Part shown: one piece after another, positions 419 through 46,875 of the stretch
Layout of the letters: each line of letters opens with the position of its first letter
Position numbering within the stretch: the first letter of the stretch is position 1
Assembly (NCBI GenBank): GCA_964199315.1
Contig: OZ116701.1
Location: 30,814,001 to 30,878,000 of the forward strand
Reading direction: 5' to 3'
Length of the DNA stretch: 64,000 nucleotides
DNA from: Orbicella franksi
Lineage: Eukaryota
Made by a program: the position numbers and the translations under genes
Notes under the pieces: generated by a model
The model's input: the letters and a program-made list of their open reading frames with translations, nothing else
Database searches by the model: none
Told to the model about the DNA's origin: nothing

Positions 419-652
419 CTTTTCTTGGTCTTTCTTGTCAGCACGTCGAGCCAAAACTAAACTAACAAAATACACTCCGTATATACAAAACACCACAGCC
501 ATTACAAAGTTTCCAGTCTCTCCCTGTTCACCAAACTGAACCCAAACTTTGTCAAAGTCGATGGGATTTGCGGCCACAAAAAAGTCTCCGCCAAATGCTG
601 ATAGATGATTACACAGGCAGTGAAGTCTGCGTATATTAGTTTTTGAGCCAAC
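419..652 (-). CDS. Gene B GPS C-terminal half and TM1 (absent from the ORF track)
   Basis: VGSKTNIRRLHCLCNHLSAFGGDFFVAANPIDFDKVW...VFCIYGVYFVSLVLARRADKKDQEK, with a TAG acceptor and a GTGCGT donor. Confidence 0.93.
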
Positions 653-45400: not shown

Positions 45401-46875
45401 TGTATATTTCCACCAAAGTAGCCTTGAGTTGCCACTCCAGTTATAATCATAGGCTGCTCAAAGTTCACTGTCAGGGATGAGTCATTAAGCTTAGGCTGAG
45501 CACGGTAGCCGCCAATGCCGTTCAGTCTCGCGCGACCGGGGCCGTACAATGCGTAGTTGTTTTGATACACTGAGTTAGCGATTATCTGACTGTCATTGAT
45601 TCGTCCATCTGCTAGTCCAAGTGGCTTGTGGCAATCTGTAAGTATAATACACTAATCAGAACAAATCCTACAAGCAAAGTTTCTAACCTACCTTCCTGTT
45701 TGTAGGTACTTCAGATGCTGCTTACCGTTTTGTTTCATTGCCACTTACAGGTTTAAGGTTTATAATCAGGGCTCAGTCGTTGAAAGGGCCTTGGATGAAG
45801 CTATCCACCGGATAAATCGCTATCCAGTGGATAAGTGTCGGTGAAAAAAATTTCGCTTTCTAATGGATAGTGATTTGTGTAGTGGATGGCATTCGAATAA
45901 ACTGGACCAGATGAGGATATATTTCGAATCAGGGATTGATTCGAATTGATCAATATTTCTTGCTGATGAAATATTTCATGTACTGAGGGAAAAAAAGGTG
46001 TAAATAGTCCGCGTACAATTAAAGCATCTCAGGTTTATCTGATTTGGAGATGCAGATGCACTGGGAAGCCTGTGTAGTCCTTGTTTACATCCATCATACA
46101 CATGAAAATTTTTCTCAAGGACTTTGGCTTGCTCGGTTAACAAGCAAATGTTTGGAAAGCAAACTCAATTAGAACAACCAAAAATCGCAATTTAAAGACA
46201 TATAATTTGACATCTAACCCATAGAATTACTGCTGTATAAATTCTGCCCCATGCTTGTCCACAAATGAAGGCCACAATCATGAAATATTCATAAAGGATT
46301 GCAAAATATTTAGAAACTGCTGTTAAAGTAACTAGGCTGAACTCGATTTCCAAAGGAAGAAATGTTCTATATGTTGTTGTTATTTTAAGATGAGCCTGTT
46401 ATTCGCTCGTGGAGAAGATTATGTGATATTAACACGTGGTTTTCATTCTGAAAGGAGTGACTGAAAAAATTGTGACTAAGCTAGGTGCAAATAACCTGAA
46501 TGAGTAAACAAGTTCGGCCACAAAGTTTCTGACAACAAAGTTCATTGATTTGGTTGAATAACAGATTAAACCAAATGTACCAAGGTAAGCGCTTATTCCA
46601 AGGTTTGGTCGATTAGAACTTATAATCACAAGATCAAAATGACTCGATATTGGACTATTTATAGAACTAAATTCTTACACAAGATGATACTGGGCAAACT
46701 GCAACGATGTAAGACAAACAATGACATTTAACCTTGTTGTTATCACACAAAAATTACAGCATATGGTGAAAATATCAACTACTGACCAACCTTTTGATAG
46801 CACACCATAAAGTGTCAACAAGATGATCCACGAAAGACAGTGAACGAGAAAACACATTTCAGTTGAACCGGCCAT
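25046..46875 (-). CDS. Gene A: polycystin-1-family (PKD1L/REJ-like) receptor-channel, 22 coding exons, 2656 aa
   Basis: Exons in transcript order: 46791-46875, 45316-45635, 44688-44829, 44041-44154, 43522-43638, 42502-42615, 41309-41419, 41075-41188, 40553-40668, 40288-40352, 38758-38906, 37041-37818, 36078-36669, 35545-35721, 34947-35072, 34264-34482, 33280-33528, 32038-32787, 29698-29934, 27962-29281, 27256-27427, 25046-26949. All introns are GT-AG with matching phases. The total of 7971 nt gives one open frame ending in TGA at 25046. Domain motifs are recognisable throughout. Confidence 0.93.
27095..27240 (+). repeat. (GATT/GACT)n tetranucleotide microsatellite
   Basis: Direct reading. 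Confidence 0.9.
27962..29281 (-). CDS. Gene A PLAT/LH2 domain and TM2-TM6 exon
   Basis: [19 protein letters not shown]...[18 protein letters not shown]...[14 protein letters not shown]...[24 protein letters not shown]. Confidence 0.96.
29415..29447 (+). repeat. (ATC)n microsatellite
   Basis: Direct reading. Confidence 0.85.
29698..29934 (-). CDS. Gene A GPS C-terminal half and TM1
   Basis: [24 protein letters not shown] (HL/S cleavage consensus), followed by a hydrophobic helix and RRADR. Confidence 0.95.
30281..30415. repeat. MITE-like element with 28-bp perfect TIRs
   Basis: CTCGGTATTGGACTGGAACTAGCTTGCA ... TGCAAGCTAGTTCCAGTCCAATACCGAG. Confidence 0.8.
30694..31966. mobile_element. Composite of a 'B' element (TTAGTATAAATCTACTAG ends, 30694-31853) abutting an 'A' palindrome (31853-31966)
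   Basis: B has inverted termini and encloses the 30765 foldback. A is AACAATTAGATTATTCGCTCTCGATTTCTAT...ATAGAAATCTCGAGCTCATAATCTAATTGCTT. Confidence 0.6.
30765..30952. repeat. Palindromic foldback element; a second, diverged and inverted copy lies at about 6058-6250
   Basis: AACAAATAGATTCCATGTTGCCGTGCGTCTGTTCAGTAA...TTACTGAACAGACACACGGCAACATGGAATCTATTTGTT. The ORFs at 5911 and 30759 translate the same repeat. Confidence 0.85.
32038..35721 (-). CDS. Gene A GAIN-region exons (35545-35721, 34947-35072, 34264-34482, 33280-33528, 32038-32787)
   Basis: All are phase-0 exons. They include helical GAIN-A-like segments, [16 protein letters not shown] and [16 protein letters not shown] (first half of the GPS). 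Confidence 0.9.
36078..37818 (-). CDS. Gene A REJ domain exons (37041-37818, 36078-36669)
   Basis: CSPPNISL...[12 protein letters not shown]...FTWLCR; CTQNC...[10 protein letters not shown]...[17 protein letters not shown]...LPVGD...DALG. Confidence 0.93.
36796..36915 (+). repeat. 20-bp minisatellite, 6 copies
   Basis: Consensus AACAGGGAACCAATTTACTG. Confidence 0.9.
38758..40668 (-). CDS. Gene A SEA-like domain over three small exons (40553-40668, 40288-40352, 38758-38906)
   Basis: [38 protein letters not shown] / [21 protein letters not shown] / [16 protein letters not shown]... The phases (1-0, 0-2, 2-1) bridge EGF5 to REJ. The pattern fits a SEA N-terminal half, and the exons are paralleled in gene B. 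Confidence 0.7.
39154..39796. mobile_element. Probable degenerate TIR element in a gene A intron
   Basis: TTAA-GGACGGTGCC at the left end and a partial inverted GGCACCGT at the right end. Confidence 0.4.
40820..41032 (+). repeat. (GACT/GACG)n compound microsatellite
   Basis: A long run of GACTGACG units; it is the source of the SVRQSVSP ORFs. Confidence 0.95.
41075..44154 (-). CDS. Gene A five EGF-like exons, calcium-binding type (44041-44154, 43522-43638, 42502-42615, 41309-41419, 41075-41188)
   Basis: Each is a phase 1-1 exon of 111-117 nt with six Cys, e.g. [77 protein letters not shown] and [37 protein letters not shown]. Confidence 0.95.
42241..42316 (-). mobile_element. Short 3' end of a related LINE with an (ATT)n tail
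   Basis: It shares the GTGTCCCC.ATTAGC...GCTAAATACAT.GACACTTAAAT terminus with the 20346 element. Confidence 0.6.
44688..45635 (-). CDS. Gene A F5/8 type C (discoidin) domain, exons 45316-45635 and 44688-44829
   Basis: [17 protein letters not shown]...GPGRARLN...ITGVATQG...WTKSY, then [14 protein letters not shown]...RLELYGC. The assembly gap lies in the intron between them. Confidence 0.95.
45089..45235. other. Assembly gap (147 N) inside a gene A intron
   Basis: Run of N. The flanking exons join in phase 0 as the homologous gene B exons do, so probably no coding exon is hidden. Confidence 0.99.
45769..45910. repeat. Degenerate palindromic MITE-like repeat
   Basis: Internal GCTATCCACCGGATAAATCGCTATCCAGTGGATAAG motifs and imperfect inverted ends. 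Confidence 0.45.
46791..46875 (-). CDS. Gene A first coding exon, signal peptide ([28 protein letters not shown])
   Basis: ATG, hydrophobic core and phase-1 donor G|GTTGGT that matches the next exon. It resembles the gene B signal peptide (LSWII..YGVLSK vs LIWFL..YRGLSK). Confidence 0.65.

Follow-up and report, generated by a model that had tools for sequence, protein, structure and literature searches.

Does a coral genome encode polycystin-1-like receptors that carry a discoidin head in front of the family's REJ, GAIN and channel core, and are such genes intact? The question is raised by a 64,000-nucleotide stretch of the Orbicella franksi genome (NCBI GenBank assembly GCA_964199315.1, contig OZ116701.1, positions 30,814,001 to 30,878,000 of the forward strand), which we call the window and in which positions are counted from its first letter. 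A sequence-only reading of this window had proposed a tandem pair of polycystin-1-like receptors between positions 419 and 46875, here called gene A and gene B. We confirmed gene A and gene B as a real, intact tandem gene pair, and we put a probability of roughly 0.7 on the reading that both are functional, anciently duplicated tandem PKD1-like genes of the 11-transmembrane (11-TM) type with discoidin heads. With its swapped heads, the locus adds another variant to the polycystin-1 family and not a new kind of protein.

Gene models were built from stop-to-stop open reading frames (ORFs), a simple splice-site score, frame bookkeeping, and comparison with the paralogue and with an orthologous pair in a related assembly described below. 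Both genes lie on the minus strand, as do all large coding ORFs of the locus in the ORF listing, and they are arranged head to tail with the proposed spacing of 9.6 kb between the stop of gene A (25046) and the ATG of gene B (15452). Gene A runs from an ATG at 46875 to a stop at 25046-25048 through 22 exons that form a single open frame of 2656 amino acids (aa). Gene B runs from its ATG at 15452 through 15 exons, or 1346 aa in the window, to an exon end at 419; positions 419 and 46875 are thus the end of the last in-window exon of gene B and the ATG of gene A, respectively. The introns of both spliced models are GT-AG throughout and both frames stay open, as had been claimed. The exon end at 419 is followed by a donor GT, so that gene B runs beyond the left edge of the window.

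The protein predicted from gene A consists of a signal peptide (aa 1-28), a discoidin domain (29-182), five calcium-binding-type EGF domains (cbEGF; 183-372), a SEA-like module (373-482) and a REJ region (483-939), followed by about 500 aa of GAIN, a GPS motif CLCNHL|S at aa 1458-1467, TM1, PLAT, TM2-6, the TOP domain, TM7-11 and a 250-aa tail. Its ectodomain contains 35 N-glycosylation sequons, and its hydropathy profile has 11 TM-like segments, grouped 1+5+5 as in polycystin-1. The attribution of this core to the PKD1 family, with REJ, GAIN/GPS, PLAT, 11 TM segments and a channel, therefore stands for gene A. Pfam scans were run on single exons rather than on full spliced proteins. The REJ region occupies exons 12 and 13 (37818-37041 and 36669-36078; Pfam REJ 4.7e-23 and 8.6e-31), the start at 37818 being set by the orthologue, and is joined to the GPS-proximal part of GAIN by exons 14-17 (35721-35545, 35072-34947, 34482-34264 and 33528-33280), which are all in phase 0 and 80-95% identical to the orthologue. 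Exons 18-19 (29698-32787) encode GAIN-B, the GPS motif (29901-29872) and TM1. As an intron interrupts GPS, the Pfam model matches weakly, in two halves (0.02 and 0.0066 in gene A; 0.0061-0.07 across both genes), and the GAIN/GPS region is homologous to named PKD1L2-like proteins. The GAIN-B part also contains a basic loop in which a short peptide with a Cys lies between two furin-type motifs, RRVRR and RQKR (32203-32247); in gene B (2415-2468) RKKR is kept and the first site is weaker.

Beyond TM1, the membrane part of gene A is encoded by exons 20-22. Exon 20 (27962-29281) carries PLAT and TM2-TM6, as judged from the Pfam PLAT match (1.3e-17), the match to human polycystin-1 chains 6a70_B / 8z6f_A (E 1.8e-47) and hydropathy, and exons 21-22 (25046-27427) carry the TOP/polycystin domain, TM7-TM11 and the cytoplasmic tail (Polycystin_dom 1.9e-24, PKD_channel 6.7e-44). 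Against solved structures the channel exon is closest to PKD2L1/PKD2 (E about 3e-55), followed by PKD1L3 (7d7e_A, 2.6e-26) and PC1 (5e-9). In a residue alignment the filter L-G-G-D (25939-25916) stands opposite L-G-D of PKD2/PKD2L1 and S6 is near that of PKD2; because this filter Asp and a PKD2-like S6 align with PKD2/PKD2L1, the pore-forming half of gene A looks competent rather than degenerate. The last exon, including the tail, has 84% aa identity to the orthologue over 634 aa. Within the tail, two A-E-x-L-D-L-L-G-x-L-P repeats (25262-25375) resemble acidic-dileucine or clathrin-box sorting signals.

For the head, the sequence-only reading had proposed a discoidin (F5/8 type C) domain with EGF and SEA modules. 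The discoidin part stands for both genes, and the EGF part for gene A only. Gene A exon 1 (46791-46875) encodes the ATG and a signal peptide with a hydrophobic core at aa 8-26, ends in phase 1 and has a 48% aa match to the orthologous sequence L002 (494-634). The first two thirds of the discoidin domain lie in exon 2 (45316-45635), which starts at the conserved N-terminal Cys (Pfam F5_F8_type_C 1e-06, 29.3 bits, profile 1-70; orthologue 83% identical), and the last third in exon 3 (44688-44829), which ends in phase 1 at a ..YGC Cys (profile 85-127; orthologue 94% identical). Gene B has the corresponding signal-peptide exon (15353-15452; phase 1 end, 74% nucleotide (nt) match to orthologue sequence L004 1473-1397) and discoidin exons 2 and 3 (14718-14384 and 13832-13691; orthologue 68-79% identical). 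Its exon 2 scores 2.6e-11 and 44.2 bits (cutoff 28.2) over profile positions 1-90, and exon 3 covers 86-127. Among solved structures, the counterparts of the gene B discoidin exon are factor VIII/V C domains, neuropilin b1/b2 and lactadherin, with E values of 1e-19 to 1e-6 for the factor VIII C domain, neuropilin and lactadherin, and also retinoschisin. The Cys pair at the ends of the domain is kept in both genes. The five EGF domains of gene A occupy one phase-1/1 exon each (exons 4-8: 44154-44041, 43638-43522, 42615-42502, 41419-41309 and 41188-41075), with Pfam EGF matches of 1.5e-07 to 2.3e-10 and weaker EGF_CA matches for EGF1, 3, 4 and 5, and all five open with D/N/E-x-D/N-D/E-C.

An assembly gap of 147 N at 45089-45235 falls inside gene A intron 2, between the two discoidin exons. 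On its donor side the exon ends at 45316 (AAG|gtaacc), 80 nt short of the gap, and on its acceptor side the next exon starts at 44829 (ttgcag|CAA), about 260 nt beyond it. Both junctions are in phase 0, the two exons jointly span discoidin profile positions 1-127, and no residues are missing relative to gene B (junction 14384|13832) or the orthologue, so the frame of gene A is independent of the gap size. The intron across the gap measures 486 nt with the estimated gap size and 379 nt in the orthologue, and nothing seems to require a hidden micro-exon.

The third part of the proposed head fared less well. Between the EGF exons and REJ, gene A has a module of about 110 aa (aa 373-482) split over three small exons (exons 9-11: 40668-40553, 40352-40288 and 38906-38758), whose boundaries were set by nt and aa conservation with L002. 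Its sequence follows the expected order of elements, beginning with a hydrophobic strand and a long helix that comes after an N-x-S site; next are a strand ending ..F-S-P-S-G.. and a further strand, helix and strand. In a protein-language-model feature search with exon 9 (38 aa), SEA clusters made up 41 of the 100 best matches with a score of 0.89, which by the calibration of the tool is a lead only; the same search with gene A exon 11 and gene B exon 4 gave no match, and neither did Pfam at E<=1, run here on gene A exon 9 only. The canonical G|SVVV sequence (autoproteolysis motif G|S[VI]VV) is absent at the corresponding place, where gene B reads ..L-S-P-H-R-S-S-F-G-Y-T-V... This motif occurs in many but not all SEA domains. 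We therefore refer to the module as SEA-like.

How similar are the two genes? They had been described as sharing exon order, intron phases and nearly the same exon sizes with strongly diverged protein sequence. Intron phases are identical at every shared junction (1,0,1; 0,2,1,2; 0,0,0,0,0,0,0), the gene A junctions between 40288 and 37818 being compared using the revised model discussed below, and exon sizes are close (A/B in nt: 142/142, 126/126, 116/110, 219/228, 750/771 and 237/234). Exon order differs in two respects: gene B lacks the EGF exons, and the 592-nt REJ exon of gene A corresponds to exons of 450 and 163 nt in gene B, which has one extra intron. The divergence is as strong as described, with 41% protein identity in discoidin, 23% in the SEA-like module, 30% in REJ, 37% in GAIN-B and 53% in GPS-TM1 (23-53% per domain). 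The gene B counterpart of the SEA-like module (exons 4-6: 13578-13469, 12722-12664 and 12142-12006; 50-75% identical to orthologue sequence L008) follows the discoidin exon without an intervening exon, at a phase-1 junction. It is followed by REJ in exons 7-9 (11106 to 10365, 9658-9209 and 8347-8185; Pfam REJ 2e-28, 2e-19 and 1.5e-05), where the first exon starts either at 11106 or at about 11076, an uncertainty of 10 aa. Exons 10-15 then comprise the mid region (7178-6999, 6514-6389, 5395-5168 and 4559-4299), GAIN-B (3017-2247), and GPS with TM1 (652-419; motif CLCNHL|S at 619-590), after which the gene continues past position 1.

All of the EGF exons of gene A, each in phase 1/1, sit within what is a single phase-1 intron between discoidin and the SEA-like module in gene B. 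The five exons are 53-63% nt identical to each other and are old copies. We infer that the two genes came to differ through gain or loss of a symmetric phase-1 EGF exon block, in the manner of classic exon shuffling.

Is this arrangement kept elsewhere? The ORF closest to the gene A REJ exon lies on an 883,780-bp contig, ctg20804, of ENA assembly ERZ25067872. This contig has an orthologue of gene A with every modelled exon and then, on the same strand and some 13.5 kb further downstream, an orthologue of gene B, so that the A-then-B order found in the window is also present in the related assembly. The gene A orthologue is 83-94% identical in discoidin, 75-92% in EGF1-4, about 45% (aa) or 79% (nt) in EGF5 and 79% in the first SEA-like exon; in the core, identity is 68-78% in REJ, 87% in PLAT/TM and 84% in the channel. 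The gene B orthologue has discoidin, SEA-like exons, REJ and GAIN, has no EGF exons, and continues into PLAT, TOP and PKD_channel exons (ORF in L007), its channel exon being open for at least 608 aa. This agrees with the suggestion that the pair continues past the left edge. Because both the duplication and the EGF difference are seen in the orthologous pair, at a synonymous divergence (dS) of 0.5-0.9, both are older than the split of the two species.

Other copies exist. A third, more distant discoidin-REJ paralogue was found in assembly ERZ25071792. Its discoidin exons precede REJ by about 5 kb, it lacks EGF, and it contains, in an intron, a Pao/BEL-type long terminal repeat retrotransposon (protease, reverse transcriptase and integrase; L009 12886-18692). 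The architecture is thus not unique to the locus, being kept in the related assembly and in the third paralogue. A search with the gene B GAIN exon returned 112 related ORFs. Every one of them comes from an assembly without annotation (Logan, ENA or JGI), and identities are 99% (same species), 82-89%, 71% (the ctg20804 orthologue), 40-49% for many, and down to 28%; with 112 related ORFs the subfamily is large. On our reading the locus is one instance of a larger cnidarian PKD1-like set with swapped N-terminal heads.

The orthologous pair also allowed selection to be estimated per domain from the ratio of nonsynonymous to synonymous substitution rates (dN/dS), a check that had been suggested for this pair. 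For gene A the ratio is 0.10-0.27 over all domains (discoidin 0.12, EGF 0.16, SEA-like 0.27 and REJ 0.27), and for gene B it is 0.28-0.42. Both genes are therefore under purifying selection, which is looser on gene B. At this coarse per-domain level there was no signal of positive selection in any domain.

The looser constraint on gene B bears on whether it might be a duplicate on its way to becoming a pseudogene, with gene A as the only functional copy. Gene B evolves faster than gene A in each comparable domain, the EGF stalk was lost or never present in it, its 3' half is outside the window, and the last intron of its orthologue contains a transposon ORF with GIY-YIG and HTH_animal matches (L005 17144-18022). 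Decay is nevertheless hard to reconcile with a run of 15 exons that are all open and have canonical splice sites, with ratios far under 1 at dS 0.5-0.9, with the intact GPS motif and discoidin cysteines, and with an orthologue that retains all exons, including PLAT and the open channel exon, and we consider it extremely improbable.

A different concern is that the fusion of head and core is a modelling artefact, the head exons being a separate small secreted-protein gene and the exons from REJ to the channel a second gene. Some features of the region would fit such an artefact. In the window the intron that separates the second and third SEA-like exons (38906-40288) is long, about 1.4 kb compared with less than 200 nt in the orthologue, and the initial gene A model here needed revision. 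Blocks conserved with the orthologue at 38949-38754 and from 37829 onward were the basis of the revised model. Two candidates were rejected: an exon at 40147-40041, contained in the extra DNA of this intron, which is open, splice-compatible and frame-keeping yet has no conservation in the orthologue, and a REJ exon start at 38016, which keeps the frame at a place where the orthologue is likewise not conserved. In the revised model the end of the last head exon and the start of the REJ exon are both in phase 1, with no in-frame stop in the head exon, and there is no conserved block between head and REJ for a second signal or start exon. The order of discoidin before REJ, on one strand and within a few kb, is common to genes A and B, their orthologues and the third paralogue, and the head domains are under the same purifying selection as the core. 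Two separate genes are in our view very unlikely.

How does the head compare with those of known family members? The nearest named full-length relatives are annotated as 'polycystin-1-like protein 2' (Antedon, Acanthaster), 'PKDREJ' or 'polycystin-1-like' (Branchiostoma) and 'sperm receptor for egg jelly-like' (Ptychodera), and the best named matches to genes A and B in REJ are 24-30% identical. The N-termini of these and other relatives before REJ contain PKD, WSC, EGF_CA, Ig or Laminin_G_3 domains, and a discoidin domain was present in none of those examined; such varied N-termini are consistent with head swapping in this family. In an exhaustive HMMER search with the gene A REJ exon, none of 150 matches had a discoidin domain, the near matches were unannotated ORF fragments, and there was no close full-length orthologue among the matches. 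A profile search from a 2-row alignment returned 46 PKD1-family proteins, none with PF00754 or PF01390; this set is biased toward vertebrate and other bilaterian PKD-repeat forms, and, having no cnidarians in it, says nothing about cnidarian annotations. In the relatives examined, PKD repeats stand immediately in front of REJ, whereas no exon of genes A and B that was tested gave a Pfam match to the Ig-like PKD repeats (PF00801/PF18911). Human PKDREJ also lacks PKD repeats, and their absence is no bar to family membership.

Genes A and B share with proteins of the PKD1L2/PKD1L3/PKDREJ type the REJ region, GAIN/GPS with HL|[ST], TM1, PLAT, TOP and a six-TM TRPP-type channel, and differ from them in a head made of discoidin, cbEGF in gene A, and the SEA-like module, in place of C-type lectin, SUEL, LRR, WSC or PKD. 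A similar logic is known outside the family: the adhesion G-protein-coupled receptors (GPCRs) ADGRF1/F5 and ADGRG6 pair SEA with GAIN, and DDR1/2 and neuropilins are discoidin-headed receptors. Common to these designs are a head that binds the ligand, with discoidin as its tip in DDR1/2 and neuropilins, a stalk with or without SEA, and next to the membrane a GAIN domain that cleaves itself. The membrane part of genes A and B, in contrast, is neither a 7-TM GPCR nor a kinase: it is a polycystin of the 11-TM type with a TRPP pore of its own.

Published descriptions give the same picture of the head. In sea urchin, the proteins SpREJ1-10 belong to the REJ-defined PKD1 family, have variable lectin-like or EGF heads, and exist as many paralogues per genome through lineage-specific expansion, resembling genes A and B in these respects; unlike genes A and B, several have fewer TM segments (PMC1934368). 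Together with the human PKD1 family, their heads comprise C-type lectin, EGF, SUEL, PKD, WSC and LRR, with no discoidin or SEA (PMC1934368). Among cnidarians, Nematostella polycystin 1, for which 11 TM segments and a TOP domain are reported, has WSC and PKD repeats at the N-terminus (PMC8846589), and a skeletal REJ-domain PKD1-like protein of Acropora has a WSC and PKD N-terminus (PMC4890752). Both are cnidarian PKD1-family proteins with REJ, GPS, PLAT and multiple TM segments, and they differ from genes A and B in having WSC and PKD repeats, the ectodomain canonical for PKD1-like proteins, instead of discoidin (with EGF in gene A) and a SEA-like module. Full-text searches for literature pairing discoidin/FA58C with REJ or polycystin found nothing relevant. 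The claim that such a head is unfamiliar among characterised members thus holds for SpREJ1-10, the human PKD1 family and the Nematostella and Acropora proteins (PMC1934368, PMC8846589, PMC4890752), and we regard the head as unusual among characterised family members.

The family was founded on lectin-headed sperm receptors for egg jelly (PMC1934368). This raises the possibility that genes A and B are gamete-recognition receptors of the suREJ/PKDREJ type, in which a lectin-like head on the sperm surface would bind egg-coat glycans and trigger Ca2+ entry, with reproductive selection driving the divergence of the paralogues. One named relative is indeed a 'sperm receptor for egg jelly-like' protein, and the REJ and SEA-like parts are the fastest evolving (dN/dS 0.27 in gene A and up to 0.42 in gene B). 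In no domain, however, is the ratio near or above 1, and the discoidin domain of gene A, at 0.12, is among its most conserved parts. The best characterised cnidarian polycystin 1, that of Nematostella, acts in touch-sensing hair cells and not in gametes (PMC11811123). We think a gamete-recognition role quite unlikely.

Several points weigh against our reading of genes A and B as functional PKD1-like genes with discoidin heads. The head-to-REJ junctions are predicted solely from phase, splice signals and cross-species conservation. A same-species Logan contig that is 99.6% identical is colinear with the genome and unspliced. The channel half of gene B would lie outside the window, its presence being deduced from the orthologue. 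Finally, the SEA fold of the SEA-like module is putative and weakly supported.

If the reading of functional 11-TM receptors is right, how might they work? The discoidin head may bind an extracellular glycan, lipid or matrix ligand, and ligand binding or a pulling force might be relayed by the stalk to a GAIN domain that would have cleaved itself. A cation pore could then be gated by the tethered peptide that cleavage at HL|S would leave, by the TOP domain, or by both; this pore would be formed jointly with PKD2-type subunits, as in PKD1L3/PKD2L1 and PC1/PC2. By analogy with relatives, candidate cell types are ciliated sensory cells (as for Nematostella polycystin 1), sperm (as for suREJ) and the skeleton-forming epithelium (as for the Acropora skeletal organic matrix protein, SOMP). 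That genes A and B may form a sensor array for different ligands, as the sequence-only reading suggested, can at most be inferred. A more far-reaching version would make discoidin-(cbEGF)n-SEA-like heads the mark of a cnidarian-specific subfamily of ligand-gated receptor-channels for glycan, lipid or matrix cues, in which genes A and B, with heads 41% identical, read different ligands and might conduct through their own PKD2-like pore without the canonical PC1-type non-conducting role; we hold this version to be unlikely.

Some further features of the window lie beside the coding exons of the pair. Introns contain, at 40789-41070, 26871-27251 and 7324-7585, short tandem repeats with long open frames in several phases (SVRQSVSP..., INQSINQS..., MVWYG...), which swell the ORF list and are not exons. 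A 27-aa stretch, 70% identical, is common to a gene A intron (30765-30845) and a non-corresponding gene B intron (6059-6139) on the minus strand and is probably a shared repeat or transposon fragment. The same-species Logan contig (L010 1-30) joins window positions 3923-3894 straight to 3384 onward, skipping about 510 nt of a gene B intron; this is an indel polymorphism or an assembly difference. Rfam, run on the whole window (1-64000) at gathering thresholds, gave no RNA family, including at 14955-15148 in gene B intron 1, a candidate hammerhead-like palindrome. Upstream of gene A, on the opposite strand, two consecutive plus-strand ORFs at 61092-62289 have an F-box match (1.8e-05) and a weak FIST_C match and look like an FBXO22-like gene.

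It has long been asked what polycystin-1-type proteins sense. Taken alone, the locus adds a further member to an expansion, and the A/B pair is a clean example of exon shuffling, with five symmetric phase-1 EGF exons in one copy and none in the other. The family swaps its ligand-binding tip and keeps the REJ-GAIN-PLAT-channel core, providing natural, ready-made chimeras. The binding chemistry of discoidin domains is well understood, with galactose, phospholipid and collagen as ligands, and discoidin-tipped proteins such as these could serve to test whether binding at the tip gates the channel.

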